From: Macrostomum lignano
Lineage: Eukaryota
NCBI GenBank assembly: GCA_002269645.1
Contig: NIVC01003112.1
Location: 1 to 64,000, forward strand
DNA: 64,000 nucleotides
Reading direction: 5' to 3'
The stretch's first letter is position 1. Every line of letters begins with the position of its first letter. The notes below the pieces were generated by a model. The model was not told the DNA's origin and did no database searches. It saw only the letters and a list, made by a program, of their open reading frames with translations. Below are positions 1,564 through 53,355 of this stretch, piece by piece. Position numbers and translations under genes: made by a program.

Positions 1564-3042
1564 TCAGCCCAGTCGCACCGGCCCCAGGTCGCAGAGCAGC
1601 TCAGTCAAGTCGCTGACGGCAGCAGATGACACGCAGGTCAGCTCGTCCGCCTGCGGCACCGCTGATTCCGAGTCCTGACTGTCGGGCTGCCGCTGCTCCT
1701 GCAGTGCTGGAACTGAAATATTGCGATAGACTTGTTCCATTCAAGTCTGCTTGCACTGACGAATTCTCTGCCTTCCGCCTGTCTCCCTTCCCTCCCCGCC
1801 TGTCTCCCTTCCCTCCCCGCCTGTCTCCCTTCCCCCCTGCCTGTCTCCCTTCCCTCCCCACCTGTCTCCCTTCCCTCCCACCTGTCTCCCTTCCCTCCCC
1901 ACCTGTCACCCTTCCCTCCCCACCTGTCTCCTTTCCCTCCCCACCTGTCACCCTTCCCTCCCCACCTGTCTCCCTTCCCTCCCCACCTGTCTCCCTTCCC
2001 TCCCCGCCTGTCTCCCTTCCCTCCCCACCTGTCTCCCTTCCCTCCCCACCTGTCTCCCTTCCCTCCCCACCTGTCTCCCTTTCCTCCCCACCTGTCTCCC
2101 TTCCCTCCCCACCTGTCTCCCTTTCCTCCCCGCCTGTCTCCCTTCCCCCCTGCCTGTCTCCCTTCCCTCCCCACCTGTCTCCCTTCCCTCCCCACCTGTC
2201 TCCCTTCCCTCCCCACCTGTCTCCCTTCCCTCCCCGCCTGTCTCCCTTCCCCCCTGCCTGTCTCCCTTCCCTCTCCGCCTGTCTCCCTTCCCTCCCCACC
2301 TGTCTCCCTTCCCTCCCCACCTGTCTCCCTTTCCTCCCCGCCTGTCTCCCTTCCCCCCTGCCTGTCTCCCTTCCCTCCCCACCTGTCTCCCTTCCCTCCC
2401 CACCTGTCTCCCTTCCTCCCCACCTGTCTCCCTTCCCTCCCCGCCTGTCTCCCTTCCCCCTGCCTGTCTCCCTTCCCTCTCCGCCTGTCTCCCTTCCCTC
2501 CCCGCCTGTCTCCCTTCCCTCCCCACCTGTCTCCCTTCCCTCCCCGCCTGTCTCCCTTCCCTCCCCGCCTGTCTTCCTCCCCTCCCCGCCTGTCTCCCTT
2601 CCCTCCCCGCCTGTCTCCCTTCCCTCCCCGCCTGTCTCCCTTCCCTTCCCGCCTGTCTCCCTTCCCTCCCCGCCTGTCTCCCTTCCCTCCCCGCCTGTCT
2701 CTCCCCTCTGCTCAGCTCCTTCACCCTTCTCTCCCTGCCCCTCACCGCTCTCAGGCGCCATCACGCAGTCAGGTGAGACGCAAAAGTCCACCAGACGCTC
2801 AAGAAAGTCGGCGACGTCCTCGGTGGTGTCGCCACCAGGCTCCTGGAATTGGAGAGATACGATGGTTTGCAGAGTAACGAATCTATTAATGTTTTAGACT
2901 ATCAAATGCTACTTTGAGCAGCTGAGCTCACCGAGTTGGATGAGACTGGCGGCAGCATGTTCTTCAGCTTGCGCAGCGTCTTCATGAGCTGACGTCGAGA
3001 TGGCCGACGGTAGACGGGAATCCTTGATGCGTCAATTGTCAT
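1564..3042 (-). CDS. Small 3-exon protein (118 aa), probable divergent ID/Emc-like helix-loop-helix protein
   Basis: Exons 3042-2932, 2842-2746 and 1712-1564 have canonical GT-AG sites with matching phases (0, 1) and a GCCACCATG start. The protein is MTIDASRIPVYRRPSRRQLMKTLRKLKNMLPPVSSNS/EPGGDTTEDVADFLERLVDFCVSPDCVMAPES/VPALQ...PVRLG*. LRKLKNMLP and FLERLVDFC resemble ID/Emc helix 1 (SKLKELVP) and helix 2 (ILQHVIDYI). The gene structure is better supported than the family call. Confidence 0.65.
1771..2706. repeat. 21-bp pyrimidine-rich minisatellite filling intron 2 of the HLH-like gene
   Basis: Unit CCTGTCTCCCTTCCCTCCCC(A/G); source of the spurious 261-423 aa ORFs here. Confidence 0.95.
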
Positions 3043-4381: not shown

Positions 4382-4509
4382 GTAAGGAGAATGAGATTGA
4401 GTATGAGAATGATATTGAGAATGAGAATGAGTATGAGAATGCGATTGGGAATGAGAATGAGAGTGAGACGGAAAAGCTGAGGATAAGATGGAATGAGAGC
4501 ACGAGAACT

Positions 4510-4572
<63 letters not shown>
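4382..4572. repeat. GAGAAT-type hexamer run followed by (GA)n microsatellite
   Basis: Directly visible. Confidence 0.85.
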
Positions 4573-4575
<3 letters not shown>

Positions 4576-6319
4576 GAGACGAAAGTCTCAGCCATGCCAC
4601 GCTTCCTGGAGTCGCCCCCAAAATCTGCACAAAGAACTTCTTACGCAACCAGCTGGCCACGGGCACAGCAATAAGAAGATAGTTGTGAAGTGATTACTGA
4701 TTACCTGGTCCGCCCGGTTACCCCCAAATCCCCGGAGCCCCCGCTGGGACACGCTGTCCCCGTGTTGTCAAACTTCATTCCCGACTCCCTGAAGGGATCT
4801 GCAGGTTGCGCAGCCGGTCTGGCGTGGGTAAAATCCCCGGCTTTGATTTAATCACCCCTTGCCAGTTCCGCTGCAAGCACCACCCCCCCCCCCAGGGATT
4901 CGAGTTAGTGATGAGGAGGGGGGTAATTTTGTTGCTTACACAAAACAAAACAAAACAGAATCCCCGCTTAGCAATCAGGGGATTGCGGTGGCGCCTCAGT
5001 TATCTTGTATCCAGGCGGAACCGGGCCTGCCGGAGCTGTAAATTATCTGTATTAGACAGGTAGGAGAGTTGCCAGGGTCCACGCAGCACAGGTATTGCAG
5101 TTGCAGTTTCGGGTCCAGAGGCTTTCTTTAGATGGCTGTGGCGAGATACTCGCTCCAGACTCCCATTTCTAGCAAAGTGCCCCGCCACTCGCAGTTCCAG
5201 TTCTTCCTTTATCTCCACCTGGGATCTCCATCAAACTCTTAACTGGGCCACAGCCTCTTTAGAGTCCCTCCCATCTTCGTAAAAACAGCCCCAAGGCACT
5301 GGTGGGAGGTGGAGGTTTAACACTGGGGATATAAATTATTACGAGTTTGAACCCGGCCAGATGTCGCCCCAAGAGACTGCGGCAGTTCATAGGCATCATG
5401 CCGTCCATTAAGTTGGGTGTTTTGGGTCTTTGTACCCAAAGTCTTTATTATCTATCCCTGCAGTTTCTGAACATGACGCAGGCAACTCAGTCTTACAGCT
5501 TAATGCTACCTAGAACCTAGCCAGCTAAATTCTGAAAAAAAAGCAGAAAAATGCATTGTAAAACTTACCGAATTGTCAAACTGAGTGTAGGAGCGGCTTA
5601 GGCTTTATCAAAGGCAGAAGAAGTCTTAGTCGTTTGACTGCTTTGTTCTGGAATATTTATAAGACAAAGACCTCTAGCTGACTACTGGGGGACTGGCCCG
5701 CTCGCGTGCTTATTTTTCTACTTGTAGCCTCTCCTCAATCCTACTTCTGGTTCTGGAGCGGCGGGCGGGGTAGGGCGGATCTTATACTGATTATACTGAA
5801 GTGGGGGGCAGAGAGGGGGTGGTGGGCGCTCCAGGACCCGAGCTGGGGTTGGCTGCGGGTGACCCCCACCCCCCAAGCGTCTATAGCGAGACAGATGTCC
5901 CGACCAGGGGGGGGGGGGTTGGGAGCTGCGGGGCCCCGGCCCCCACCGCCCCCAACCGACGCCATGGGAGATGCGGGCGGCGGCCCTGCCAGCCTGTGAC
6001 TCGACAGGCTGTAGCATCAAAGTCTCTTTAGTCTGCTTTTGAAAATAAAAACAAGCAGGGTAAGAGGGATCGGGGATTTATCCTTTTATTTAGCAGTGCG
6101 GAGCCGAGCGGGAGAGCCGGTCTGCAGATGGTGCAGTAAGCAGGTCACGCTGGGGCTTGTCCCCAATTCGGTTTACCAGAGCCCCAAAATAGCAGCAGGA
6201 CTGGAGAACTTAAAAAAGAAAAAACCATTTGCCCAGGGAGTTCCGGATTCTTTGCTGGCCTTGGTCTATATTCTTCTACAATACAATGTTCACTCAATTC
6301 ACGCCTCACGCCTCAAGTC

Positions 6320-7132
6320 ACAGCACCATCACCTCAATTCACAGCGCCATCCCCTCAATTCACAGCGCCATCCCCTCAATTCACAGCGCCATCCCCTCAA
6401 TTCACAGCGCCATCCCCTCAATTCACAGCGCCATCCCTCAATTCACAGCGCCATCCCCTCAATTCACAGCGCCATCCCCTCAATTCACAGCGCCATCCCC
6501 TCAATTCACAGCGCCATCCCCTCAATTCACAGCGCCATCCCCTCAATTCACAGCGCCATCCCTCAATTCACAGCGCCATCCCCTCAATTCACAGCGCCAT
6601 CCCCTCAATTCACAGCGCCATCCTCTCAATTCACAGTGCCATCCCCTCAATTCACAGCGCCATCCCCTCAATTCACAGCGCCATCCCCTCAATTCACAGC
6701 GCCATCCCCTCAATTCACAGTGCCATCCCTCAATTCACAGCGCCATCCCCTCAATTCACAGCGCCATCCCCTCAATTCACAGCGCCATCCCCTCAATTCA
6801 CAGCGCCATCCCTCAATTCACAGTGCCATCCCCTCAATTCACAGCGCCATCCCCTCAATTCACAGCGCCATCCCTCAATTCACAGCGCCATCCCCTAAAT
6901 TCACAGCGCCATCCCTCAATTCACAGCGCCATCCCCTCAATTCACAGCGCCATCCCCTCAATTCACAGCGCCATCCTCTCAATTCACAGTGCCATCCCCT
7001 CAATTCACAGCGCCATCCCCTCAATTCACAGCGCCATCCTCTCAATTCACAGCGCCATCCTCTCAATTCACAGCGCCATCCCCTCAATTCACAGTGCCAT
7101 CCCCTCAATTCACAGCGCCATCCCCTCAATTC
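6320..7132. repeat. 21-bp tandem repeat, about 38 copies
   Basis: Unit CACAGCGCCATCCCCTCAATT, with occasional single-C deletions. Confidence 0.95.
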
Positions 7133-7774
7133 AGCCAGCCCCACCCGTCCAGATATCCTCCCCAGAAGAACTCTCTGGCTTGGCCATGCCACTACAGCGC
7201 AACTCAGCCACAGTCAAACAAGCCATTCTAATCCAATTCCAAAAACTCGAAAGGAACTCGATTCGACTCCGAATTGACCTACTTTCCGATCGCGCAGTCT
7301 AGACTGGAGGCTGGAGCCTCAGCCTCCCCCGGTTAAAACGGGATTGCAATTTCAACGGAGAAAAGTAGCGAAACTCGAAAAAAATCCGAACCACTTTTCA
7401 GTGCGTCTACGAGCTACTTTGCTGCTTTGATTGAAACCAAAAAAGAGTTGATGACGAAAGTTCGGATGGCTCCTTAGTTCGTTCATCATAAATTAATTTT
7501 TTCTCTCAGACACGGCATAAAATGGATGGTGAATGAATGAAAGTTGGGATCAGTTTCCGTCTCGTTCCAATTTTGTGACACGGGTTCTGCATTTGTGGAC
7601 AATCTAAATTCAAAATTCAAGTTTAGTCGCACAAGAGATTGATGGTTTGAATTTTCTTTTAGTGACTTCTCGAAATGCAACAACGGCTACGGGCTCCATT
7701 CAATATTTTTGGGACTTTCTCAGCTCACAGTTCAACTCAACCTTTTCAGATTTTGGACTGCCAATTTTGCTTAT

Positions 7775-8110
7775 TTGTTGGCGCCAGTTCAAATGAGTTG
7801 TTGGCGCCTGTTCTGATGAGTTGTTGGCGCCAGTTCTGATGAGTTGTTGGCGCCAGTTCTGATGAGTTGTTGGCGCCACTTCAAATGAGTTGTTGGCGCC
7901 AGTTCTGATGAGTTGTTGGCGCCAGTTCTGATGAGTTGTTGGCGCCAGTTCTGATGAGTTGTTGGCGCCAGTTCTGATGAGTTGTTGGCGCCAGTTCTGA
8001 TGAGTTGTTGGCGCCAGTTCTGATGAGTTGTTGGCGCCAGTTCAAATGAGTTGTTGGCGCCAGTTCTGATGAGTTGTTGGCGCCAGTTCAAATAAGTTGT
8101 TAGCGCCAGT
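7775..8110. repeat. 23-bp tandem repeat, about 14 copies
   Basis: Unit GAGTTGTTGGCGCCAGTTCTGAT. Confidence 0.95.
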
Positions 8111-9534
8111 TCCGCTACTGTTTTGCAGCAGTTTTATCGCGGGTTTCTTGCTCGGGTTCGAGATCTGAACTGAAAATGAAATTGCTAGTGAACTGGCATG
8201 CTGGGGTGCCGGGGTCAGCACTCAGCAGTGCCCAGCACACTTGCAGATCGAGTTTCTATCGGTCTTAAATGATAAATGAAATGCAAATTTGCTTGATAAA
8301 CATAGCCATGACGTCACTAATGAACGGCAGCTGCCTTAATTCATGCCCCCTCAGCTATCGGATTCCCAGGTGCCAAATGATGACCCCGCCAAGGTGTTGG
8401 GTTTCTCACATTATGTCTGTCATTTCGCTCTCTCGATGCAGTCTTTGTGACCGCCTGCCTGCCTGCCTGACCGCAGTTTAATTGAGGGAATTATGCCCTA
8501 AGACAGTTTTTTCTAGCCCTGTCGGTAACTTGATCCAAATTAGAACGCACACCGGCCCGAGCTGTTCCGATATGGATAATTCAATTTCACTTTTTTTACT
8601 ACAGGCTGCCCTAATTGGTAAATTATCTCACCTACCAGATGGATGTCCATGTGCTTTGTCTTCTGTTTCCCAGCCGTCCCTTTCTTCCTTTCCGCCTCCC
8701 TGCATGCTCATCTCATTCGAATCCTTTGCTTCTCTGTTGTGAACTCTGCTTTGCGTATTTGCTTTGAGAAAGCGATGGTTGGGCCATAGACATTCCGCAT
8801 CAATGCAGGTAACATGACTCATGGGTATTCACAGCAGTGACCTCGCCTCTGTGACCCATATCCCGCTAACCTGTTTCACTCCCTATGCTTAATCTCTCTC
8901 TCTCCCTCTGCCGAACCTCTCTCCCTCTGCCTAACCTCTCTCCCTGTTTGTATCCTGAAAATGTATTATTCTATCTTCACCTTAAATGTCTCATTGGTCA
9001 GAGTTCGCGCCAGACGACCGCACTAAATGCGCCCCAAATAAGTATGGACGCCATCAGACAGACATGATCAAGGAGCTGAGCTCAGCCTCTTGTCTCCCAC
9101 TCCCACATTCTTGCATTCACCGGCAGGCTCAGGCAGAAGCTCACAATTCAACTTGTGTGGTCTGGAGCGAAGCTTAATGCGAAATACGCTGGTAGTTTTA
9201 ATTCTCCTTATCTGGGAGTCGGCTCTTATCTCTTGACTACACAATTTTAATAGCTTTGTTGCGAATATTTCCCAGTGTGGCCACCTATGGCCGAGGCCAC
9301 GTGATCCGCCTGTCCGCCAGTCTGGTGGAGAGTAGGGAGGGGTTGGTCCGCGTCAAAACAAAGCCAGCTTGAACTTTAATTTTAGTCCGTAAACATCCGT
9401 TTTTATCTGATTTTGTCTCGTGCAAACTGAAACAGCTCTAAAACCGAATATTATGAGCCTTTTCACTCTAACCGATTTGCCGTTAACCGTTTGCTTTAAG
9501 TTTCAAAACGATGGAAAATTGAAATTGTTTGAGA

Positions 9535-9805
9535 GAGGAGGAGCGAAGGAGGGTAAAGAGGGTAAAGAGGGAACTGAGGGTAAGTAGACAGGTCAGTAGG
9601 GCACATGAAGACAGGGGACAGAGGGGACAAGAGGGACAGAGGGCACAGCTAGGGTACACAGAGGGCACAGGGGGACACAGAGGGCTCAGGGGGGACAGAG
9701 GGCACAGGGACACAGAGGGCACAGGGGGACACAGAGGGCACAGGGGGGACAGAGGGCACAGGGGGACAGAGGGCACAGGGGGACAGAGGGCACAGGGGGA
9801 ACAAG
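9535..9805. repeat. Purine-rich degenerate repeat (GAGGGCACAGGGGGACA-like)
   Basis: Directly visible low-complexity array. Confidence 0.8.
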
Positions 9806-10479
9806 GAGAATGGAGCATTAACATCAGCTCACAGCCCGCTAGGATGTGGAGCCAATGGGTTCAGGAGTTTCGAAAATAATTGTCCCCGGGGCCGCAGTGC
9901 AAACCAATAAAACGAGTTAGCCAGTATAATACAGGAGTTTTATGTTGCGACTAAAGGGGACAAGAGCCATCAATGCTTCGTTCTTTCGTTATGATTCGGG
10001 AGTCTATCAAAATTTATTATTTTCCACTGATAAGTGATGATTGCGCTTGCACTGAGGGGTTTTATTTTTGACACAAGAAGTCAAGTCACAAAAGTTTGAA
10101 GTCTTTGTCACTGCGAAAGATGGTAGATATTTTGCCTCATGCTTTTGCTTGCTTCCTTCCGATTTCTGCTAAACGTGGATCTCTGAAAGTCTAAGCCATC
10201 AAAAGTCTGTTGTGTGTTCTAAGATTTGCGCTTGAAACGAACTGAAAGAACACATGGGACATGAGGTATTGAAGTTATGAATTTTTTATTTTATTTTTTG
10301 TTTGCAATATATCCGTCTAACGAGTAGTACGAAACGCATTTGGTTGAGTATCACTTCTCTAATATTTATTAGTCAGAGAAGTTGCAGATTTTTTGCGTTT
10401 CGAGTGGGAAATGTAATATTTGCGATGCATAGTCAGCTGGCAAAATATTGTTCAACGTCAGTCAGCTTCAGCATGCAGC

Positions 10480-11574
10480 TCAGGTAGCTGTGACGGCGGG
10501 CCCTGAAACGGTCGAAGTTTTCCCTGTGTAGGTGGAGCCCGCGCGGCCCCGGCCGCCGCCCGGGTTGCCGAAGCAGCGGTCGAGGCGGAACGTGGCCACG
10601 AAGTTGGCGCGGAACCCCTGGCCCATGAAGTAGGCCATCCAGTTGAAGGCGTTATTCATAAACAGTAGCGCGTTCAGGTACTCAAAGATGCGATGTCGGT
10701 CGTTGAGGGGTATCCAGTCCAAGGCCCCGAAAGTCTCAGTGGCGCTGAGCAGGCTCCATGGGAGCGTGAACATCAGGAAGTTGACGTTGAGAATGACCAG
10801 CACCAGGCTGAGCCGAATGGCGCGACTCTTCCTCTTATCGTCGCCGTTGTTGGTCTCGCCGAGGCCGCGGGCGCTGCGCAGCAGCATGACGCAGATCAGC
10901 GTGGTGCCCAGCAGCAGCAGGACGGCCAGCATCAGGCGGCCAACATAGAGCTCGTACTGCGTGTAAAATATGTAATACGCATCGTCATCGACTACACTCA
11001 CGTCTCGAAGCTCCGGATCCCACTCGATCAGGTAGATGGTCAGGGCGGGGAAGGACACGGTCAGAAGCAGAACGATGGCTAGCAAGATGGCGCTGTTTCG
11101 TCGATTCATTAGCTGCTTGGCCTTCAACGGAAAACAGACAGCGACGGCGCGGTCGACTGTGAGGCCCAGCTGCAAAAACGGAGCCCCGAACACCAACAGG
11201 TAAGTAAGGATGTAATAGATGCGCATCACTACAGCGCTCAGACTGCGCACCGGCCGATACCAGGACTGCGGATTCGTGACTAAGATAGTCGTGATCTCCA
11301 AGTAGTAGATTGGGCCCTGGGCCAGAAGGATCACAGTATCGGTGGCGCTAATCATCAGCATGTAAAGCCGGCTGTTTCTAGGAAATGACTTTCTATTGGC
11401 AGCCGTGACGATGAAACAAGCGGCATTAAGAAAACCGCCGCTCAATACCAGGACTGGGAAGAGCCAAGAGAAGACGTGGCGAACGAAAAAGTTCCAGCTG
11501 GGATCCCAGTACCACGGCGTGTACTGGCCGGCTGCGCCGTTGCCTGTCGAGTCGTTGGCCGCAGAGGAATTCAT
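10480..11574 (-). CDS. Intronless class A (rhodopsin-like) GPCR of the peptide/FMRFamide-receptor-like type, 364 aa
   Basis: N-terminal N-glycosylation sites (NSS, NDS) and seven hydrophobic segments. TM1 GGFLN, TM2 SATD, TM3 LTVDRAVAVCFP, TM6 FTLPW, TM7 MNNAFNWMAY, then helix 8 GQGFR. A 3' splice acceptor lies 7 nt before the ATG. Confidence 0.92.
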   Translation of the reverse strand: MNSSAANDSTGNGAAGQYTPWYWDPSWNFFVRHVFSWLFPVLVLSGGFLNAACFIVTAANRKSFPRNSRLYMLMISATDTVILLAQGPIYYLEITTILVTNPQSWYRPVRSLSAVVMRIYYILTYLLVFGAPFLQLGLTVDRAVAVCFPLKAKQLMNRRNSAILLAIVLLLTVSFPALTIYLIEWDPELRDVSVVDDDAYYIFYTQYELYVGRLMLAVLLLLGTTLICVMLLRSARGLGETNNGDDKRKSRAIRLSLVLVILNVNFLMFTLPWSLLSATETFGALDWIPLNDRHRIFEYLNALLFMNNAFNWMAYFMGQGFRANFVATFRLDRCFGNPGGGRGRAGSTYTGKTSTVSGPAVTAT

Positions 11575-12461
11575 GTATGCGCTGCGGGTTAAGAATGGAA
11601 AATTACCCTAGTCTCAGTCCTTGCTTCAATGGCTTAAATCGTGCATTAACTGCAATAGCTAGACTGTCGGCTCTGAGAGCATTTGCTCTTAAAATCAGGG
11701 AGCATAAACATTCTTAGTGGAGCGCCTGCTAATGCGGGCAGGCAAATGCTTTTGGAGTATCTCTGCTATGCATGTTGGTTCTTGAAAAAGTCCAGCAGTT
11801 CAGAGTGTGCTGATCGAAATCATGTCACTGTTAGTAGCTTACCGGCTACACGGCTGTAGAGAGCGGATGAATTTTTGATCCCATCGCTCAGGATTCTTGG
11901 GGATGAAATTTATATACAAGCCCGGATTGAGTAGGTGGTGGGGCACACCGTGCGATCGCAGCATGTGCTGCATTCCCAAAGGAATTGTCTCCGATGGGTG
12001 TATCAAAGGATGCAGCTAAATTGGCTAACTGGAAAAGTGGCAGATGGATGGACAACTCAAAATTCAAAGCCACATTGCGGCTATCAAAGAAGCTTGAAAA
12101 GATTGGAATGGGGCCGTATTTTTGGGCAGCTCATCAATAAATAAAATCTATGCCTAGAGGGTCTAGACTCTTTTAGGGGCCGCCAAATGCAGTTCTTTGA
12201 TTGTTTGTTTATCCGCAGCAAAAAGGCTATTGGGATCGCGTGAGATGGTCTGGTCTTTGTTGTTCAGGCTGCCTTGCAACGGATGGCTACGAATCATTGG
12301 ACTCGACGCTACTGCTTGATCACTTCACCTAAATCGACCCTCCCGCGTTTGGTGTGCCTTTTTGATTGCCTTCGGGTCATACATGGAGACAGGTCATCGA
12401 AGATTGGGTCATTGCTCTGGCGCCTAAGTTTAAATGCACACGTACTCGATACTCGTAAGTC

Positions 12462-12612
12462 GGGGCATCACGAACCCGAAATATCACAAACCCGAAAGTG
12501 TTAGCAGCACCCAACGCTATTTTCGTTTTCGGAGTTGATTAGTTCGGATAGCTCGTATCTCGGGTTTGCGATATTTCGGTTTTTTACATTTCGGGTTTAT
12601 GATGGCGACCCC
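12462..12612. mobile_element. Short MITE-like element with imperfect terminal inverted repeats
   Basis: Left GGGGCATCACGAACCCGAAAT versus the reverse complement of the right end GGGGTCGCCATCATAAACCCGAAAT. Internal ACCCGAAA subrepeats occur in both orientations. Flanks GTAAGTC / GTAAGGC resemble a decayed TSD. Confidence 0.55.
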
Positions 12613-13320: not shown

Positions 13321-13824
13321 TCAGCCGCCGTAGTTGCCCGTCACAACGAGCTGCACAGGGGGCGGGTTAGGGCTGGTCCTGCTGCCCAGTTCATCGCGCA
13401 GCCACATGTCATACAGCAGCCGGGCGTCGTCATTCAGCGCCCCACCGCGTACGGTGAGGCCCCCGAAGTTGCCCTGCCACTGCCTGATGAGCTCCTTGAG
13501 TCGGCCGACCGTCTCCCACCTGGCCGCGTGGACCTCGAACTCCCGACCGTCAGCTCGGCGAACCCTGACAGTCATGGCGTCCGGCAGGCTCTCTCCGGGC
13601 GCGAGGCGGCCCACCAGTCGCAGGTAGGACTCGGCCACGGACTGCGCCTCCGACAGCAGGCCGGGCCGCGGTCGCCCTCCGGCCTGAAGCTCCGACTGCA
13701 GGTCCTGAGCTCGTCTCCGCTCGTTCTCAGCAACCTCCGATGCAGGCCCTTTGGCGGCACTGCCGTCGGCTACGCTGGCAATGGCTCTACGGGTGAGTTG
13801 CTCGCTCTGCTGTCGGCTGGCCAT
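13321..13824 (-). CDS. Ubl-A: ubiquitin-like protein with an ~83-aa N-terminal extension and exposed C-terminal Gly-Gly (167 aa)
   Basis: Intronless GC-rich ORF. MTVRVRRADGREFEVHAARWETVGRLKELIRQWQG aligns with ubiquitin [35 protein letters not shown], followed by GLTVRGGALNDDARLLYD (cf. RLIFAGKQLEDGRTLSD) and ending VQLVVTGNYGG*. TATA box upstream and AATAAA at 13205-13210. Confidence 0.85.
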   Translation of the reverse strand: MASRQQSEQLTRRAIASVADGSAAKGPASEVAENERRRAQDLQSELQAGGRPRPGLLSEAQSVAESYLRLVGRLAPGESLPDAMTVRVRRADGREFEVHAARWETVGRLKELIRQWQGNFGGLTVRGGALNDDARLLYDMWLRDELGSRTSPNPPPVQLVVTGNYGG

Positions 13825-13884
13825 GTCTCAATCTGTTGGAGCAGTCCGTGGATTTTACAGGGCCGAGCCATTGTGGCTGGCTGC

Positions 13885-13971
13885 TTTTATAGATGACAGT
13901 CTCCGGGGCTGCTGCGATTCTGTGTGTCGAAGTTCGAATCGGCTCTAGATGAGTCAGAGTTTTCGATTTCG
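13885..13971 (-). promoter_or_regulatory. Ubl-A promoter: TATA box, AP-1 site and IRF/ISRE-like element
   Basis: Minus-strand CTATAAAA at 13885-13892, TGAGTCA at 13950-13956 and minus-strand CGAAATCGAAAACT at 13958-13971. Confidence 0.6.
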
Positions 13972-14894
13972 ATGCTAAGTTTAGCAGTGACGTTGTCAGT
14001 TTTTAAAAAAAATCGTCAGTATGTGATCGTGCGTAGCCCTCCTATGCCTATTTTTGGATGAGAGATGCCGTTTGCTATTTCCTAGAAATGTTTTAGGAAA
14101 ACGACAATTTCTTAGAAACTGTTCGAAACATTTGTGAAAAAATCCTCACTTCTATATTCAGCTTCTACACTTCAAGGGCCAGATAAAGAATCCAGATCAT
14201 GGCCTTGAGAGATGAGAGAAGAGATAGAGACAGAATAGGAGGAGAGAAGAAAGGGATGAGAAGAGAGCTGAGAAGATTGAGCAGGCCGGATTGCTATTTT
14301 GAAGTTTCAAAGGACCCTGAGGGCCGGATAGAGAGGCTTCGCGGCTGACATGTGGCCTGCGTGTAGAATCTACAAGAATGCATCCATGAGACTACGAGTT
14401 CAGCATCCAAGCCTTTCTACATGTATAAGGCTGACCTCATGAGATAAATGATTTAAAAAATTCAATTCTACCACGAACTGAAGGCGCCAAGCTCTGACGA
14501 ATAAAAGTTTATTTTACCGGATTTGTTCTTTCAATGATTAGAGGATGGTTTAAAACATTGCAATTTTTCACCTTGTAGGCGTTTTGTAACGGCCAGAAGC
14601 AGCAAGCAGAAGTGTACGCTGCATGGCTTCATGCAGTGTTGCAGCTGCAGTCCAATTGTTCTATTTTTAGCACCCCGAAGGTGAAACATTTATTGTAGGT
14701 TGGATTTTCCAAGTTAGCCAAATGCCTCCTGCTCAGCAACTAAATATGTGGAATTAAAGATTAACAACGCGAGGGAGTCAAGGACAATTTTTAAACTTCT
14801 TAGGATTTTTATTATTTGGTGGACTTATATTTTCACACATTATAAGAAATATAATCAGTAGATGTTCCGCAAATCACAGTAGAAATCGCGGGCG

Positions 14895-15259
14895 GAGAGC
14901 AAGCTGGTCTGGCGCAGCTGCCAGCGGCAGCCCCCGGGGTGACGTCGAGGAGGGTCAAAAATTTTTTTTGTCGGCCGCTTTGATTCGGCAGAAATCGAGA
15001 AGCGAAATTATTTCAAATAGAAAAATTAACGCGCGAGTTTTTTGGTTTGTCATACGGACAAAGTCGAGAGTAAATAGAATATAATAAGCAAGCATAAAAT
15101 CAATCAAGCCCCCATGTGGGCCAGCATGCAGTTTTACAGCAGCGGTGCTTTTGACAAATATGGGATAAATTCCGACGCAGTTCCCGGACGCCCCCGTCTT
15201 CACCTGGTCGCCGTCGCCCCGGGGGCTGCTGCTCAGCTGGGCCAGACCAGCTTGCTCTC
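14895..15259. repeat. Imperfect ~55-bp GC-rich inverted repeat pair separated by ~250 bp
   Basis: 14895-14950 GAGAGCAAGCTGGTCTGGCGCAGCTGCCAGCGGCAGCCCCCGGGGTGACG matches the reverse complement of 15204-15259. Confidence 0.8.
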
Positions 15260-15607
15260 TCGCACCCAGACCGCTACTAACCGATCTCATAGGCTACAGT
15301 TAGCTTAGCTAAAGTACATTTATAAGATATAGATGAGCTCGCGTATTCAGGTCTTGCTATCGAAAATAGCATCGCATAGCAACACAAAAACACGCACGAA
15401 ACTCATCTAAATCTGTATAAATGGGATGCTTTCCGGCAGCCAGGTGAAGTTTCAGAAGCTCCAGGAAATGAGTCGGATTTTTTTCCCTCGGGATCATTTG
15501 GGACTTTAATATGTTTCCATACAGTTAGTTAAAATTCTCCGCTGCCATAAAGACTACTAGCAAAAAAGGGCAAAGCAAAAAAAGTTAACCGAGTGGCCGT
15601 CCAAAGT

Positions 15608-16090
15608 TCAGCCGCCGGCGTTGCGCACCGTGCTCTGCACTCTGGGCTGGCTGCCATTGGCAACCGTCAGGCTCCCCAGCTGGTTGCGCAGCCAAAGATC
15701 AAATAGAGGCCGGTTGTTGGCCACCGGCCGACCGTCCATGATGAGGCCGCCGCCGCCGATCCGCTCCTGAAGCGACTTCACGGTCTCCCAGCGGGGCACC
15801 GACACCTGGATCGGTCGCCCGTCAGTGCCGTGCACGCGGACCGACATGTTTCCCACCAGGCTCTCGTTCGGGGCCAGCCGACCGACTTGCCGCAGGTAGT
15901 TCTCGGCCACGGACTCGGCCTCGGACAGCAGGCCGGGACGCAGCTGGGGGCCAGCTTGGAGCTCCGCCTGGAGCTCGAGAGCTCGTTGCCGCTCCTGCTC
16001 CAAGTGAGCGGCTTGGCCTGCGCTGCCATCAGCGATGCTGTCGATGGCCCTTCGAATGAGCTGCCTTCGTGCATTCTCCGGTGCTGACAT
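15608..16090 (-). CDS. Ubl-B: paralog of Ubl-A with exposed C-terminal Gly-Gly (160 aa from ATG 16090)
   Basis: Starts AAAAATATG; the ORF track extends it from a non-ATG start. Shares RRAI.S.ADGSA, RPGLLSEA.SVAE.YLR.VGRLAP.ESL, M.VRV...DGR, RWETV and L.D.WLR..LGS with Ubl-A, and ends VQSTVRNAGG*. Confidence 0.85.
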   Translation of the reverse strand: MSAPENARRQLIRRAIDSIADGSAGQAAHLEQERQRALELQAELQAGPQLRPGLLSEAESVAENYLRQVGRLAPNESLVGNMSVRVHGTDGRPIQVSVPRWETVKSLQERIGGGGLIMDGRPVANNRPLFDLWLRNQLGSLTVANGSQPRVQSTVRNAGG

Positions 16091-16179
16091 ATTTTTCTTT
16101 AAACAAGCAGACGTTTCAAGAGTTCTAGAAGTTGAAGCCTTGCACTCGCTTAGCTCTTCCACGGCATTTCCTTGCCGTG

Positions 16180-16210
16180 TTTATATAGACTGTCGCCGTT
16201 TTCGATTTCG
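16180..16210 (-). promoter_or_regulatory. Ubl-B promoter: TATA box and IRF/ISRE-like element
   Basis: Minus-strand CTATATAAA at 16180-16188 and CGAAATCGAAAAC at 16198-16210. A further GAAATCGAAAA (16500-16510, plus strand) lies near TGAGTCA (16471-16477). Confidence 0.6.
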
Positions 16211-17435
16211 GCGCCAATTTTAGACATGACGCGGTGGTTTCATCATAAGCGAGCAATTCCGACCTTGGGACTGGGGCTCCCACGGACTGTCGGTACGGGT
16301 GCGGAGGGCGAATTGGACAGCAGAGAACAGCGCAGACTGAGAGCCAATAAGACCGTGTACTCTGTCAGCAAGTTGCTGAATGTTGCTTGGATTTTCCAAG
16401 AAAATTGAACTTATGCCCCACCTTGCAGTCCCGCTATGATATTTATAAAAAAATCTATTTCTGGAGCATCTGAGTCAGATCCAGAAGCGGTGTTATTTTG
16501 AAATCGAAAATTTTCGCTTTCGTTGTCATATTTTCATGGTGCTTTTGCAGCATCTTGCTCGGAGGGGTCTGATATTTGTACGTACTGTTGCCGTTGATGC
16601 ATTAAAAATTGTTTAACTGCGTACACGCCATATTGCCCGATGTACACTTACAGTATAGTGAGTCTCAAGCGTATGTATTTCTCAATCCCGTTAATAGAGA
16701 TTCATTACTTCTATGCACATTATTAACTAACTAATCTACCCCAAAAAGTTTGCAATGGTCCCGTATGACTTGTTTTGTGTCTAATCGATTAATTCATTTT
16801 GGCAATAAAATTTCCACTATTTTCATTGTTTCGAAAACTCAATAGAAATCAGATCTTAACACTTGAATTGCAATTTCGGGTAGGCTTCAAATAGCTAATT
16901 ATTCTACTCGTAGTAGAAAGTAAGACATTTTTGCAACGGAAAATTGCAGTACGTGGGTACAGACAATAGAGCGCTTGACTACAGACTAGATTTGCATGTG
17001 GCAATATTTTTTTAATGACACGAATAATAAATGTACACGTATAAAGTCGACCGTTTTCACTAGCATAACAATTCTAGTTGCTTAAACAAATTTTTCACGA
17101 ATGAAACGTCGCCACAAAAAACGAGGGCTAATATAGGCTATTAAAAGCTTCCTTTAATGTAATTAAGACATACATCCCAATAAGACGGATAGCCGTCCTT
17201 CCACACAGGTGTCAGAATGAGGGGGGGGCGTGGGGGGGCATGTCCCCACCACTTTTTTTAGCAATTTTTAATACATTTTCCTCCTAATAGAGTGCTTAAA
17301 TTGCTGGATGAGGACTTCATAAAAAAAGATAATTCTATGCAGGAGCGTCGCTTACCGAGGGTACAGGGGGACATGTCCCCAGCCCAGTAAAAGCTATGGG
17401 GGAACGCCAATTCTTTTTAAAACGTTCCGACGTCT

Positions 17436-19853: not shown

Positions 19854-21695
19854 TCTTTTTCTCTTAGCTGCAGGGCTGTCCCGGAGGGGACACAGTGGGA
19901 AGGCACAGGCGCCCATTCCGCTAATCCCTGAACAGCCGACGCGTCGCTATGGACGGAGGGTTGGCGCCGCCCAGGGAGGTCCCCCAGTGTCGCCAGCAGC
20001 TATAGTGCTCTCTGGAAAGGAGAGTTCAGCCCTGTGGGTGGCCCAAAGGTAGCGCATGAGCTGATTAAAGTTTTCGGGTTTGCACGCTTCAGTAATAGAT
20101 GTGTGTGGCCCGAGGTAAGTGAGTCTGGCCCGCGTGAAAGCGGGACAGATGCTGACGAAATGCTCAGCGGTTTCGTCACCTGAGTTGCAGAAACTACAGG
20201 TGGCGTTGGTGGCGTTGCCCTGCAGGTACTGGTGCCTGGAGAAGCAGCCGTGACCTGAGAGGGTCATGGTGGCAGCCCGGATGTCTCTGCGCAAGAGGCG
20301 CAAGAGGAGCTTCCGGAGCTGGTGAGAGGGCTGAGGGACAGTGCCTCTGGATTGCCTGCAGTTTGTGCGGTTCGCCCAAGACGAGCGGTGCTGGGTCCTG
20401 ATCCACGCTTTGATGCGCGAGTCGATGACACAGCCAGGAATCGGGACAAGAGGTTCGGGGCCGAGAGAGGAGCCAGAGGCACCAACTTTTGCAAGGATGT
20501 CAGCCAGCTCATTTCCTCGGATCCCCACATGCCCCGGAACCCACTTAAGGGTAATTTTGTTGGCGGAACCCAACACGTTGAGAAGTTTGATACAGTCAAG
20601 GACTGTAGCAGAGTTCGTGCTGCAGCCACTGATGGCGTGCAAGGCAGCTTGGCTGTCCGAATGGAAAATGATGTTCTTGCCAATAACGCCAGTGGCGAAA
20701 AGCTCTGCAGTGCAGGAGCTGATGGCCAGAACTTCATTTTGGAAAACACTGGAGTTGACCCCAGTGTATTGAGCATGGGTAGCGATGACCCTCCCGTTCA
20801 GAAAGATTCCAACACCAAAGCCGGTGTTGGCTGACTGCTTAGAACCGTCAGTGTAGCAATGAAGCTCACCAAGGTTCCATTGGTCATTGATGTTATCGCG
20901 CGAGTTGATAGCTACGGAGTAGCGCTGTCTCAGGTTGAGCGTTGAGGCAATGCGATTGGTGAAAACGCGATTGGCCTGACACTCGTTGAGAAAGTTGAGG
21001 CACAGGTCGCTATGCGGGACAAGGTTCTGCTTAGCAGGTGCTCTCATGTAAATGAATTTGACGCTGGCATCAATTAGACGCCGCGTCGTTCTAGCCGCCT
21101 CACCCCTGACGAAGAGGTCAAGAGGCGGTAGATTAAGGAAGGCCCCCATGCCAGCAAAGGGCGTGGACCTGGTGGCGTTGCAGATGAGCCTACACGCTCT
21201 GCCTTGGATCGTGTTGAGCAGGTCTGCATGGCTTTTGACCTGGGTAGCGCTAACCCAGACAACTGAGGCGTATGTAATAGCAGGTCTAACTACAGAAGTA
21301 TAGATCCACCAAAGCCGCTTTGGGGATAGACCCCAAGAAGTGCCAAGTGCTCGTCGGAGCTGGGCCAGGATGGCTGAGGCACGCTTGGCTTTTGCTTTCA
21401 CGTGGAAGGACCAGTTGAGCCGGTGGTCAAGTGTGACCCCGAGACATCTGGTCTGGTGCGCCAAGGCAATATCTCTGCCATAGAGCTGCAGAGGTCATAT
21501 GTTCTAGCGTATTCTGCTGGTGAACATAATGGCAACAGTTTTGGGCTCGGAGAGTTCCAGACCATTGTCATTGGCCCAGGATTCTGCTTTGTGGATAAAG
21601 CTCTGCATCAGATCCCTGAGCGTGCTGGGAGACGGTCCTGCCACAATGGCCGTGACCGTGACGTCATCAGCATACCCGACTTTGAAGACGGGTTC
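19854..21695 (-). mobile_element. 5'-truncated non-LTR retrotransposon (RT C-terminal half, RNase H, CCHC; LOA/R1/I-group type)
   Basis: GYADDV at about 21660-21675, two in-frame stops, then LGVTLDHRLNW, RNase H CYTDGSK...SDSQAAL...WVPGHVGIRGNELAD and CSFCNSGDETAEHFVSICP. A 13-bp TSD GTATAATACTACT lies at 19841-19853 and 21696-21708. Confidence 0.93.
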
Positions 21696-32339: not shown

Positions 32340-37091
<4,752 letters not shown>

Positions 37092-37510: not shown

Positions 37511-38009
37511 CACTGGCGCTAAAGTGCCAATTGAAAATCGGTTGAATGCCCAGATTTGAAGAATGAGAAGATGGAGGACTGAAAAGTGGCTTCGGCGTAT
37601 TTTTTTCCTACACCAAAAGCAAGCAGATTCCCAATCCCCAGTCAGTTGAGCTCTCAGAATGGAGGGGAGAGCGGGAAGATGGGAAGCGAAAGCGAGCAGC
37701 GATTTTGGGAAGCAAAAGTGGAAGGCAGAACTCTGATCCTCCCAGCCTTCCCTTCGCCTGCATGCACCCCGCTCTATGCCCGGTTCAGCCATTGCACTGC
37801 AGTCGCTCATGCGCAAGCGCACTTGACCCAGCGGCTGCAGACCTGCCTAACTTGTGTGCACTTTCCGGACCAGGTTGAATGCGACTTGCCAATTTTGCCG
37901 AGATGCGACCTGGTTAAGCTTGGCAGTTCCCGAGCTGGCTGCGCTGCTCCTTTCTGTGAGGCCCTGCCCCTAAAATCAGGTCTTATCGGCTTCCTTTGCC
38001 TCAGTGCCA

Positions 38010-38850
38010 GTCGATCTCAAGTCTCCTCTCAGCCTACCTTTCAGCCTCCCCTCTCAGCCTACCTCTCAGTCTCCCCTCCCAGGCCTACCTCTCAGTCTCC
38101 CTCCCAGGCCTACCTCCCAGGCCTACCTCTCAGTCTCCCTCCCAGTCTCCCTCCCAGTCTCCCTCGCAGGCCTACCTCTCATTCTCCCTCCCAGGCCTAC
38201 CTCTCAGCCTCCCTCTCAGTCTCCTCTCAGTCTCCCTCCCAGGCCTACCTCTCAGCCTCCCTCTCAGTCTCCTCTCAGTCTCCCTCTCAGTCTGCCTCGC
38301 AGGCCTACCTCTCAGTCTCCTCTCAGTCTCCTCTCAGTCTCCTCTCAGTCTCCCTCTCAGTCTCCCTCTCAGTCTCCCTCTCAGTCTCCCTCTCAGTCTC
38401 CCTCAGTCTCCCTCTCAGTCTCCCTCAGTCTCCCTCCCAGGCCTAACTCTCAGTCTCTCTCAGTCTACTTCCTACGCTACCTCTTAGCCTCCCGCTTAGT
38501 CTCTCTCTCAGTCTCCCTCTCAGTCTCCCTCTCAGTCTCCCTCTCAGTCTCCCTCTCAGTCTGCCTCGCAGGCCTACCTCTCAGTCTCCTCTCAGTCTCC
38601 TCTCAGTCTCCTCTCAGTCTCCTCTCAGTCTCCCTCTCAGTCTCCCTCTCAGTCTCCCTCTCAGTCTCCCTCAGTCTCCCTCTCAGTCTCCCTCAGTCTC
38701 CCTCCCAGGCCTAACTCTCAGTCTCTCTCAGTCTACTTCCTACGCTACCTTTTAGCCTCCCGCTTAGTCTCTCTCTCAGTCTCCCTGCTACGCTACTCCC
38801 AGTCTCTCTCTCTCTCTTTCAGTCTCCTCAGTCTCTCTCTCAGCCTCCCT
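38010..38850. repeat. CTCTCAGTCTCC-based ~12-bp degenerate minisatellite with an internal block duplication
   Basis: Directly visible; the CCTAACTCTCAG...CTACGCTACC block occurs twice. Confidence 0.9.
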
Positions 38851-39284
38851 CAGGCTCAGCCTGTTAGATCAACAAGCCACCAAAAGCGAAGCCCGAGCTC
38901 CCAGGCTCACCTGCTGTTGGGCTGTCGTCCCAGTTGCGCGGATCGGCTCTGCCTGGCAGCGGTTGTCTGTCGCTCGCAGCGGTGAATCGCCGGCTGAATC
39001 CCCGGCCAGCTTCGGGCCGAGAGCGCGAGAGCTTTGCAGCCGGGCAGAGTGCGGCCGGGGCAGAGGGGGCCGCCGGGTCCCCCGAGCTGGACGCGAAGGG
39101 ACGTATCAGGCCACCGTCCATTGGAGGGGAGGAGCGCACTCTGCTGCCCGCCTCCCTTCCCCCACTCTGCCCGGATGCGCCTCCTCCTCATTCCAGCGAT
39201 ATCCCTCCCCAGCCAGTCTGCTTTCAGCTGCTTTGCCTGTCTTGAAACTGCCGGTTTGTGCTGCTACTTGCAAGGCTAGTTAAG

Positions 39285-39827
<543 letters not shown>

Positions 39828-40461
39828 ATTTCACACGAGCCGGAACCGTGTTCATTATGCGTGTCTCTCCGCATCCCCCAGGAGAGATCCTGGAGCCTGA
39901 GTCACCGGATTCATCCGCCATTTCCAAGTCACCCCTGGATCTCTCGCAGGCCTATAATCAAAGTCCAGCTTGTAAGCAACAGAGTAAAAAAGTATCACTT
40001 TGTTTACAAAGTTTTCCGCGCATATTCTGCGCCATTCCGCTCCTTCTGCCACTTTGATGTGGGCACTGCGGCTGCGGTTTGAGCGCCGCAGAGCCGGCCG
40101 GATCAGCTCATTAATGAGGCACGCGTGGGGCAGCTCCGAGACGGGGATAATGGACTGAGAGAGGCTCCAGGCAGGCGTGGAGGGGCCGGCGCAGGGCGAC
40201 AGAAGCTGTTTATAAAATCAACGAAGCGGCCTCTGCCAAAAAAGGATTTGAAGAGATTTTGGGGCAAGGGAGATTGCAAGGGGAGAGAGGTTGAAGGAAG
40301 GAAAAGAGGAAGATGGAAAGCGGGAGAAGGAGAGAGGTTGAGATAGAGGGGGGAAAGGGGAGAGGTAGAAAGGAGAGTGATAGAGGGAAATGGGAGAGGG
40401 AGAGGGAGAGAGTGAGAGGAAGAGAAGAGAGGGAGATGGCACTGCCTAATCAGTTAAAAAG

Positions 40462-41270
40462 GGCAAGCAGTGAGAGGTGGACAAGCAGTGAGAGGTGGGC
40501 AAGCAGTGAGAGGTGGGCAAGCAGTGAGAGGTGGGCAAGCAGTGAGAGGTGGGCAAGCAGTGAGAGGTGGGCAAGCAGTGAGAGGTGGGCAAGCAGTGAG
40601 AGGTGGGCAAGCAGTGAGAGGTGGGCAAGAAGTGAGAGGTGGGCAAGCAGTGAGAGGTGGACAAGCAGTGAGAGGTGGGCAAGAAGTGAGAGGTGGGCAA
40701 GAAGTGAGAGGTGGGCAAGAAGTGAGAGGTGGGCAAGAAGTGAGAGGTGGGCAAGAAGTGAGAGGTGGGCAAGCAGTAAGAGGTGGGCAAGAAGTGAGAG
40801 GTGGGCAAGCAGTAAGAGGTGGACAAGCAGTGAGAGGTGGACAAGCAGTGAGAGGTGGGCAAGCAGTAAGAGGTGGGCAAGAAGTGAGAGGTGGGCAAGC
40901 AGTAAGAGGTGGACAAGCAGTGAGAGGTGGACAAGCAGTGAGAGGTGGGCAAGAAGTGAGAGGTGGGCAAGAAGTGAGAGGTGGACAAGCAGTGAGAGGT
41001 GGACAAGCAGTGAGAGGTGGGCAAGAAGTGAGAGGTGGGCAAGAAGTGAGAGGTGGGCAAGAAGTGAGAGGTGGGCAAGAAGTGAGAGGTGGACAAGCAG
41101 TGAGAGGTGGACAAGCAGTGAGAGGTGGACAAGCAGTGAGAGGTGGGCAAGCAGTAAGAGGTGGGCAAGCAGTAAGAGGTGGTCAAGAAGTGAGAGGTGG
41201 TCAAGAAGTGAGAGGTGGGCAAGCAGTGAGAGGTGGGCAAGCAGTAAGAGGTGGTCAAGAAGTGAGAGGT
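40462..41270. repeat. 18-bp tandem repeat
   Basis: Unit GCAAG(C/A)AGT(G/A)AGAGGTGG. Confidence 0.95.

Positions 41271-43797: not shown

Positions 43798-53355
<9,558 letters not shown>

Follow-up and report, generated by a model that had tools for sequence, protein, structure and literature searches.

Two adjacent genes in the genome of the flatworm Macrostomum lignano encode ubiquitin-like (Ubl) proteins, and their upstream regions raise the question of whether these genes are switched on by promoters comparable to that of vertebrate ISG15 in an animal that lacks interferon. A sequence-only reading of the locus had proposed such an ISG15-like inducible architecture, based on a TATA box, an element resembling the IRF/ISRE core, and nearby AP-1 sites in both genes. 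Here, we evaluate the encoded proteins, the promoter elements, and the competing explanations for those elements. Our analysis was conducted on a 64-kb window, which is the whole stretch of DNA that was analysed, from M. lignano contig NIVC01003112.1. The features under discussion are listed in Table 1.

Table 1. Positions of the Ubl genes and of their promoter elements in the 64-kb window.
Feature	Positions	Strand	Description
Gene A (Mlig030606-type)	13321..13824	-	Intronless CDS, 167 aa; ORF and GenBank gene call
TATA box, gene A	13884..13891	-	TATAAAAG, 59 bp upstream of ATG
AP-1/TRE TGAGTCA	13950..13956		2 bp from the gene A ISRE-like element
Conserved promoter block, gene A	13959..13992	-	3' end is CGAAATCGAAAAC (13959-13971); 5' end is CGTCA
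GAS/STAT-type palindrome, gene A	14078..14088		TTTCCTAGAAA, matches TTCYNRGAA
Second GAS/STAT-type palindrome, gene A	14108..14118		TTTCTTAGAAA, 30 bp from the first
Gene B (Mlig027467-type)	15608..16090	-	Intronless CDS, 160 aa; paralog of gene A
TATA box, gene B	16180..16187	-	TATATAAA, 89 bp upstream of ATG
Homologous conserved block, gene B	16198..16231	-	Identical 13-mer at 16198-16210, 10 bp upstream of the TATA box
GAS/STAT-type palindrome, gene B	16393..16403		TTTCCAAGAAA
AP-1/TRE TGAGTCA	16471..16477		22 bp from the GAAATCGAAAA arm of the gene B distal palindrome
Distal palindrome, gene B	16498..16524		TTGAAATCGAAAATTTTCGCTTTCGTT; two inverted ISRE-like half-elements

The Gene Pair and Related Loci

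Genes A and B are tandem paralogs that are both intronless and both encoded on the minus strand. Their products share 55% amino acid identity, and their coding sequences share 70% nucleotide identity. Divergence between the two is substantial (dN of 0.37, dS of ~0.96, and dN/dS of ~0.39) and only 48% of four-fold sites are identical, placing neutral sites close to saturation. The same gene pair was identified at two further loci, L001 (NIVC01002405.1) and L002 (NIVC01000406.1), which retain every promoter motif and have upstream regions that are 98% identical overall. The three loci are homeologous or allelic, and because they are 98% identical throughout, they provide no independent evidence of conservation or constraint. 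Footprinting with L001 and L002 was uninformative on constraint for the same reason.

Pfam scans of 20 large ORFs revealed no E1, E2, or E3 near the genes. The same scans identified a GPCR, an RNase H retroelement, and a calpain exon. Full-text literature searches for expression of Mlig030606 and Mlig027467 returned no match, and neither gene has an entry in the supplements of PMC5816591, PMC12732829, PMC7806878, PMC5946080, or PMC12896417.

Ubl Proteins Encoded by Genes A and B

The products of genes A and B are divergent ubiquitin-like proteins with a C-terminal GG followed by the stop codon. The gene A product comprises a helical N-terminal region followed by a ubiquitin-like domain. The AF2 model contains three N-terminal helices, within a helical extension of 80 residues, and one beta-grasp unit (residues 83-162; mean pLDDT of 74.5) with the secondary-structure order bbabbab. 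A profile of A and B matched polyubiquitins with E-values of 1.8e-13 to 1e-3, summed over repeats, and PDB polyubiquitin chains with an E-value of 1.6e-17; the E-values for PDB chains of single ubiquitin or NEDD8 were only ~0.1-1. These matches span positions ~44-143 only, and mostly 78-135, and the Pfam ubiquitin model matched the gene A product alone at an E-value of 0.08. The profile and the AF2 model thus identify the ubiquitin homology and the beta-grasp fold that characterize a Ubl modifier.

The C-termini of the two paralogs are ...TGNYGG and ...VRNAGG, with GG directly preceding the stop codon in both paralogs at all three loci. Judging from this directly encoded end, the proteins could be candidates for Ubl conjugation without processing. 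No full-length homolog outside M. lignano was detected among 1.84 billion representative proteins, and the family is lineage-restricted and evolving fairly fast.

ISG15 has two tandem ubiquitin-like domains and a C-terminal LRLRGG. The A and B proteins have a single beta-grasp unit, have neither that terminus nor homology to ISG15, and no ISG15 chain was found among the PDB matches of their profile at E <= 1. They are not ISG15 orthologs. Since they have one Ubl domain, an NYGG or NAGG end, and no full-length homolog outside M. lignano, the term 'ISG15-like' denotes an analogy only and not family membership. The architecture proposed in the sequence-only reading is supported in part: the promoter motifs are non-random and conserved and are accompanied by GAS-type palindromes, which would fit an ISG-like layout, but the proteins do not belong to the ISG15 family.

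Promoter Elements Shared by Both Genes

The 13-mer CGAAATCGAAAAC is present in exactly two copies in the 64-kb window, one upstream of each gene and both on the minus strand in gene orientation (Table 1). In shuffled sequences, with up to one mismatch allowed, the mean number of matches was 0.05 and none of 100 shuffles reached two. The claim that both loci carry a common element in the same orientation is therefore correct, apart from a start (13958) that was one base off. The claim of a canonical TATA box in both genes was likewise upheld; both boxes match TATAWAWR in gene orientation, and their distance from the ATG is as expected for a TATA box. Between the 13-mer and the TATA box there are 67 bp in gene A but only 10 bp in gene B.

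The 13-mer forms the end of a 34-35-bp upstream block with 79% identity between A and B (local score of 36; null scores averaged 21.7 +/- 2.4 and did not exceed 28), and this block is the only significant local alignment of the two upstream regions. The CGTCA at the 5' end of the gene A block is a CRE half-site. A second, weak block aligns positions 13984-14014 with 16425-16455 at 71% identity. Global alignment of the promoter pair with MAFFT misplaced the motif and was uninformative. The loci had been described as not aligning outside of the coding sequence, which is true of a global alignment but not of the 34-35-bp block. That this block still aligns although dS is ~0.96 indicates that the 13-mer is probably under constraint.

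The elements match the IRF/ISRE core GAAANNGAAA (ISRE: GAAANNGAAACT), as had been proposed, and the two promoters together contain three copies of GAAATCGAAA and one of GAAAGCGAAA. At their 3' end, the elements carry AC or AT where the vertebrate ISRE has CT. The core was observed nine times in the window versus 2.2 expected, and four times in the two 500-bp promoters, for which local dinucleotide shuffles gave 0.14 and none in 5000 reached four (P < 2e-4); these and all other motif statistics reported here refer to the single 64-kb window, and some of them were selected post hoc. An earlier concern, that the motif could be at background frequency or part of a repeat, was not borne out in the window, where the promoter copies exceed background and lie outside of repeat features. 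An extra ISRE-like match is present at positions 12519-12531, inside a MITE-like hairpin element. Collectively, the promoter elements resemble the IRF consensus, which fits a candidate role in binding a factor of this type.

On the gene B side, roughly 300 bp upstream of the 13-mer, two ISRE-like half-elements form a palindrome with arms GAAATCGAAAA (16500-16510, plus strand) and CGAAAGCGAAA (16512-16522, minus strand). The former had been described as a third copy of the shared element. It does exist, but on the plus strand, opposite in orientation to the genes, as one arm of the palindrome. GAAA units in these elements are either repeated directly every 6 bp or arranged as palindromes with a 3-bp spacer.

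GAS/STAT-type palindromes are a motif class that the sequence-only reading overlooked. The sequence TTTCNNNGAAA, an extended version of the GAS palindrome, occurs five times in the window versus 1.06 expected, and three of these five copies are in the two promoters (3 versus 0.06 in local shuffles; P = 2e-4). All three promoter copies match the GAS palindrome consensus TTCYNRGAA. At L001, the version of the site at 14108 is TTTCTAGGAAA in gene orientation, which still matches the consensus.

Perfect AP-1 sites had been noted at 13950 and 16471, and both are indeed present beside ISRE-like sites. However, the frequency of TGAGTCA in the window is at background (14 observed versus 11.8 expected), and AP-1 sites as such do not appear enriched. 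The probability of TGAGTCA being within 30 bp of at least two of the three ISRE-like sites by chance is ~5e-4, a post-hoc figure. Among 500-bp windows in the 64 kb, ISRE-like, GAS-like, and AP-1 motifs are present together only in these two promoters. The observation that the two genes share promoter motifs is confirmed.

Interpretation of the Promoter Architecture

The motif set suggests switch-on-demand expression. We consider it about an even prospect that a compact composite promoter has persisted in both genes since they were duplicated, and that signal-activated factors acting on it would render Ubl expression stimulus-dependent. The parts of such a promoter would be the TATA box, the proximal GAAA direct repeat CGAAATCGAAAAC, the GAS-type palindromes, and the AP-1 site beside the ISRE-like element, with an additional inverted pair of the ISRE-like motif in gene B. 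We infer that these elements are binding sites of signal-activated transcription factors. For the GAAA repeats, an IRF-family protein would be the best consensus match; the TTCYNRGAA palindromes may be recognized by STAT or another factor that reads TTCC/GGAA; and a bZIP protein is a possible binder of TGAGTCA. Together with a TATA core and short, intronless genes, these sites would permit rapid bursts of expression on infection, wounding, or stress, and the product of such a burst would be a Ubl with a free GG end that may be conjugated without processing.

Several components of the required background have been described in flatworms and other animals. An IRF has been cloned from Schistosoma mansoni (SmIRF) and a planarian homolog exists (PMC2194728). 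M. lignano is reported to retain RIG-I-like receptors (PMC8476169) and has at least six Mx genes (PMC11789081). In Nematostella, genes induced by poly(I:C) are enriched in TATA boxes and IRF/STAT motifs (PMC8476169). In an older survey, by contrast, IRF3 and NF-kB were scored as absent from Schistosoma (PMC4117786). Also counting against the stimulus-dependent reading are the unequal spacing of 13-mer and TATA box in the two genes, the AC end of the element, and the background density of AP-1 sites. We searched with the human IRF1 DNA-binding domain, using a query sequence that was confirmed by 100% matches; the matches listed were all of 202 aa or less, nearly all of those that were named were vertebrate, and none was from M. 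lignano. A literature search for flatworm STATs yielded nothing usable.

Alternatively, the motifs could be real cis-elements that serve different factors, possibly specific to flatworms, and that drive constitutive or tissue-specific expression (e.g., reproductive or gland), with their likeness to ISRE and GAS being coincidental. We regard this as possible but somewhat doubtful. The motifs are short, and TTTCC/GGAAA cores could equally suit Rel-homology or NFAT-type factors. The family is lineage-restricted and fairly fast-evolving (dN/dS of ~0.39), a profile that is also reported to be typical of Macrostomum reproduction-related genes (PMC7336406). Moreover, a planarian IRF3-like gene has been described as diverged with 'no clear homolog', and it had no role in the single innate-immunity readout tested (PMC13563047). 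However, two immune-type consensus classes and AP-1 co-cluster at these promoters only, each motif class matches its vertebrate consensus fully, and the combination of a TATA box with an intronless structure is typical of inducible genes (PMC8476169).

A more specific form of the stimulus-dependent reading holds that a basal flatworm independently evolved an ISGylation-like system, in which IRF/STAT-type factors would act via ISRE/GAS-like elements, without interferon, to switch on a lineage-specific Ubl whose GG-stop end makes it ready for conjugation. We consider this unlikely. If true, inducible protein-modifier genes would have come under ISRE/GAS logic before interferon existed or independently of it.

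The 13-mer could instead be functionless, having survived by chance from the ancestral duplicate or having been homogenized by a short gene-conversion tract. Because A and B are tandem duplicates, their promoters share ancestry, and weak colinear blocks do persist between them. Yet with 48% identity at four-fold sites and a dS of ~0.96, a neutral match at 13 of 13 positions would have a probability of ~0.48^13, or ~7e-5, while the remaining promoter sequence no longer aligns. An isolated 13-bp conversion tract in otherwise unalignable sequence is unlikely, and this explanation also leaves aside the non-homologous motifs nearby, namely the distal palindrome and the three GAS-like sites. We consider lack of function quite improbable.

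HSF recognizes nGAAn as its half-site, and the classic heat-shock genes include those for ubiquitin. The GAAA-rich elements might accordingly be variant heat-shock elements (HSEs) of HSF-driven proteotoxic or heat-stress genes similar to those for polyubiquitin, a suggestion that gains from the strong, HSE-driven heat response of M. lignano (PMC12801592). Nevertheless, heat-responsive promoters in M. lignano carry canonical HSEs (PMC12801592), whereas the canonical nGAAnnTTCnnGAAn was found in neither of the two promoters, which contain no more than isolated matches of two units (at -484 in A, at -40 in B). In addition, direct repeats with a 6-bp period and palindromes with a 3-bp spacer do not have HSE geometry. 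We therefore rejected the heat-shock element reading, which is very improbable given that the canonical HSE is absent from both promoters.

Least probable of all, to a degree that led us to reject it, is the origin of the motif in a dispersed repeat or transposable element, since MITE-like inverted repeats are indeed nearby (12466-12604, which contains the ISRE-like match at 12519-12531, and 14895-15259), but the 13-mer is confined to the two promoters (in the window and in the scanned related-locus positions 4500-10100) and its copies there have no surrounding terminal repeats or TE features.

If the motifs in the proposed composite promoter work as their consensus suggests, genes A and B would become the first candidates in a flatworm for targets of IRF/STAT-type regulation, and they would parallel ISG15 and other inducible Ubl modifiers independently of interferon. 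If the motifs work otherwise, the locus would provide a clean case of a short cis-element that old paralogs of a lineage-specific Ubl family have both conserved. A transgenesis method is established for M. lignano (PMC5730564), such that the 450-bp gene B promoter can be directly tested as a reporter. This promoter might also serve M. lignano as a compact inducible promoter.

Comparison With Known Systems

In vertebrates, ISG15 and other ISG promoters contain an ISRE that is bound by IRFs/ISGF3, and genes A and B similarly have a GAAANNGAAA-type element near the core promoter of a Ubl gene. GAS-type STAT palindromes occur in ISGs such as IRF1 and GBP, and palindromes of this type are likewise present in the A and B promoters. 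Unlike vertebrate ISG15, however, genes A and B belong to an animal without interferon, in their products a three-helix N-terminal region precedes the one Ubl domain, and these products end in NYGG or NAGG followed by the stop codon. Their element ends in AC rather than in the CT of the vertebrate ISRE.

Invertebrate IRF-ISRE antiviral circuits are reported to include the cGAS/STING-TBK1-IRF circuit of oyster (PMC8218723) and the IRF-Vago circuit of shrimp (PMC4602278). Like Nematostella (PMC8476169), these animals lack interferon, and their induced antiviral genes are linked to IRFs, ISRE-like sites, and TATA-rich promoters, a setting that the A and B promoters may resemble. Those circuits are documented by expression and partly by binding data, whereas A and B are known from sequence, and what they control are cytokine-like genes or classical antiviral ones rather than a lineage-specific Ubl.

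Within the same phylum, IRFs with an IRF DNA-binding domain represent candidate trans-factors. These include SmIRF (PMC2194728) and the diverged IRF3/4-like gene of Schmidtea, for which no effect was reported in a single assay (PMC13563047).

Relative to the Type I modifiers ubiquitin and NEDD8, A and B differ in their 80-residue helical N-terminal extension, in directly encoding the mature GG end, and in a per-domain similarity that is very low, as reflected in the E-values against the single ubiquitin and NEDD8 chains. What they have in common with these modifiers is the predicted beta-grasp order of strands and helices, a weak but consistent profile similarity, and the C-terminal di-glycine.

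Ubiquitin-Like Paralogs and Their Surroundings

Best protein match and exact-sequence look-up placed the window on Macrostomum lignano contig NIVC01003112.1 (assembly GCA_002269645.1); positions in the window are identical to those in the record. Genes A and B, tandem ubiquitin-like (Ubl) paralogs, have 55% amino acid identity and 70% nucleotide identity across the CDS (dN 0.37, dS 0.96; four-fold degenerate sites 48% identical). Their Mlig names come from the transcriptome-guided annotation of the M. lignano genome (PMC5730564), and therefore transcripts of both presumably exist. The pair also occurs on NIVC01002405.1 (L001) and NIVC01000406.1 (L002), where gene B encodes 160 aa from the ATG. 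The GenBank CDS of gene B in L003, on the window's own contig, encodes 178 aa (7681-8217; window 15608-16144) from a TGC start upstream of the ATG; this gene model is probably either incomplete at its 5' end or wrongly started. The B-A spacer is ~2 kb longer in L002 (6066-10000) than in L001 (8028-10000) or L003 (8218-10000), and the difference is therefore an insertion or deletion polymorphism among homeologous or allelic loci.

The gene products are ubiquitin-like. Against Pfam, protein A alone gave a sub-threshold ubiquitin match (E 0.08). A profile of A and B searched against 1.84 billion representative proteins retrieved the two paralog clusters first, followed by polyubiquitin-type proteins only, each aligning several times over to profile positions ~78-135 (best E 1.8e-13, with E-values summed across repeats); no full-length homolog from outside M. 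lignano was found among these proteins. Among PDB entries, the profile matched polyubiquitin chains; its matches to single chains of ubiquitin or NEDD8 were weak. An AlphaFold2 model (mean pLDDT 74.5, built from only 5 aligned sequences) comprises three N-terminal helices followed by strand-strand-helix-strand-strand-helix-strand across residues 83-162, the predicted strand/helix order of a beta-grasp. Both proteins end in Gly-Gly immediately 5' of the stop codon. Identity with ISG15 was rejected, as each protein has one Ubl domain rather than two, terminates in NYGG or NAGG in place of LRLRGG, and lacks ISG15 homology; unlike ISG15, both carry an 80-residue helical N-terminal extension. The label 'ISG15-like' is thus acceptable only as a putative functional analogy.

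Pfam scans of 20 large ORFs revealed no conjugation-enzyme gene nearby; neighboring ORFs include a rhodopsin-type GPCR (absent from the gene calls returned for that part of the record), an RNase H ORF that is probably a retroelement fragment, and a calpain exon. Nested inverted repeats flank ~250-310 bp of the A-B intergenic region and represent a foldback or MITE-like insertion. Strand composition is extreme at 2001-3000, 34001-35000, and 38001-42000 (GC skew -0.60 to +0.57; AT skew as low as -0.77). These stretches overlap long ORFs in multiple frames, a pattern suggestive of low-complexity or satellite-like DNA.

Features of the Ubl locus and the remainder of the window
Feature	Position	Strand	Details
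Gene A (Mlig030606)	13321-13824	minus	single exon, 167 aa
Gene B (Mlig027467)	15608-16090	minus	single exon, 160 aa
13-mer CGAAATCGAAAAC, gene A promoter	13959-13971	minus (gene orientation)	exact match
13-mer CGAAATCGAAAAC, gene B promoter	16198-16210	minus (gene orientation)	exact match
Gene A TATA box TATAAAAG	13884-13891		canonical, 59 bp before ATG
Gene B TATA box TATATAAA	16180-16187		canonical, 89 bp before ATG
GAS/STAT-type palindrome TTTCCTAGAAA	14078-14088		upstream of A; consensus panel
GAS/STAT-type palindrome TTTCTTAGAAA	14108-14118		upstream of A; consensus panel
GAS/STAT-type palindrome TTTCCAAGAAA	16393-16403		upstream of B; consensus panel
TGAGTCA	13950		
TGAGTCA	16471		
Third ISRE-like copy	16500-16510		inverted relative to genes
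CGAAAGCGAAA	16512-16522		
ISRE-like match CGAAAACGAAAAT	12519-12531	minus	in loop of hairpin element
Small hairpin or MITE-like element	12466-12604		nested inverted repeats
Nested inverted repeats	14895-14953 / 15203-15259		arms 26 and 31 nt, 84-96% complementary
Rhodopsin-family 7TM ORF	10480-11574	minus	single exon, 364 aa; 7tm_1, E 1.8e-10
TATATAAA upstream of 7TM ORF	11909-11916	minus	
RNase H domain ORF	19947-21464	minus	505 aa
Calpain exon-like ORF	44475-45008	plus	protease domain, N-terminal half (Peptidase_C2, E 2.4e-27)

A Motif-Dense Promoter Common to Both Genes

Two old paralogs share a conserved, motif-dense, TATA-containing promoter. The sequence-only reading had placed an ISRE-like element upstream of a canonical TATA box, in the same orientation, at both genes; this holds, with exactly two copies of the 13-mer in 64 kb (shuffles with one mismatch allowed averaged 0.05 matches), lying 67 bp (A) or 10 bp (B) from the TATA box. 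These promoter copies belong to no repeat family. The reported third copy exists in inverted orientation, forming a palindrome with CGAAAGCGAAA. An extra ISRE-like match in the loop of a hairpin element is probably irrelevant. Across the two 500-bp promoters, GAAANNGAAA occurs 4 times versus 0.14 in dinucleotide-preserving shuffles (0/5000 reached 4), and GAAA/TTTC tetramers are ~3x denser than across the whole window.

Local alignment of the 800 bp upstream of each gene returned, as its best match, a block of 34-35 bp that terminates 3' in the 13-mer (CGTCAcTG-CTAAAcTTaGCatCGAAATCGAAAAC; score 36 versus 21.7 +/- 2.4 when shuffled, maximum 28), which a repeat finder also recovered (D4, 79% identity). 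Global alignment fails outside this block, such that the earlier statement that the loci do not align beyond the CDS is correct globally but overlooks one aligned segment. Descent of the promoters from one ancestor, with indels, is evident from weak colinear blocks (D5, D7). Since neutral divergence between A and B approaches saturation, the perfect 13/13 match is best explained by purifying selection. L001 and L002 retain every promoter motif, but because these loci are 98% identical throughout, they provide no independent evidence of conservation.

A consensus-site panel applied to both promoters revealed a second motif class absent from the earlier account, GAS/STAT-type palindromes, all three of which fit TTCYNRGAA. 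The window contains five TTTCNNNGAAA matches (1.06 expected), three of them within the Ubl promoters, where 0.06 are expected from dinucleotide-preserving shuffles (P = 2e-4). The AP-1 sites noted previously are present, but across the window TGAGTCA occurs at its background rate (14 versus 11.8 expected), making this claim weaker than stated; the chance that two or more of three ISRE-like sites have TGAGTCA within 30 bp, a cut-off set post hoc, is ~5e-4. In a 500-bp sliding scan of the 64 kb, ISRE-like, GAS-like, and AP-1 motifs co-occur only in the two Ubl promoters. The GAS-like sites and this clustering render the shared-motif observation somewhat stronger than originally claimed.

Proposed Regulation and Comparison with Known Systems

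The promoter looks like, and possibly works as, an ISRE/GAS-type inducible promoter. GAAA direct repeats are candidate IRF-type sites, TTCYNRGAA palindromes candidate STAT-type (or Rel/NFAT-type) sites, and TGAGTCA a candidate bZIP site; jointly, these may confer stimulus-dependent transcription on small intronless Ubl genes whose products would be ready without C-terminal processing. We consider the chances about even that these are functional, signal-responsive cis-elements of these kinds. Judged from motif content, an immune-inducible, IRF-driven promoter is a reasonable hypothesis, while a complete IRF/STAT-driven, ISGylation-like Ubl system is improbable. The layout of TATA box, ISRE-like, and GAS-like motifs resembles that of vertebrate interferon-stimulated genes. 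A heat-shock promoter was rejected, as the consensus scan found no canonical heat-shock element (HSE) in either Ubl promoter, unlike M. lignano heat-responsive promoters, which have canonical HSEs (PMC12801592).

Among flatworms, Schistosoma mansoni has a cloned IRF whose DNA-binding domain is tryptophan-rich, with a planarian homolog marked in the authors' table (PMC2194728). An older survey scored Schistosoma as lacking IRF3 and NF-kB (PMC4117786). A planarian IRF3/4-like gene was termed diverged and had no effect in that study's assay, and clear IRF3 and NF-kB homologs were not identified in Schmidtea (PMC13563047). M. lignano reportedly retains RIG-I-like receptors (PMC8476169) and has at least six Mx genes (PMC11789081). 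With their TATA boxes and IRF-type and STAT-type motifs, the A and B promoters are like those of poly(I:C)-induced genes of Nematostella, in which TATA, IRF, and STAT motifs are enriched (PMC8476169).
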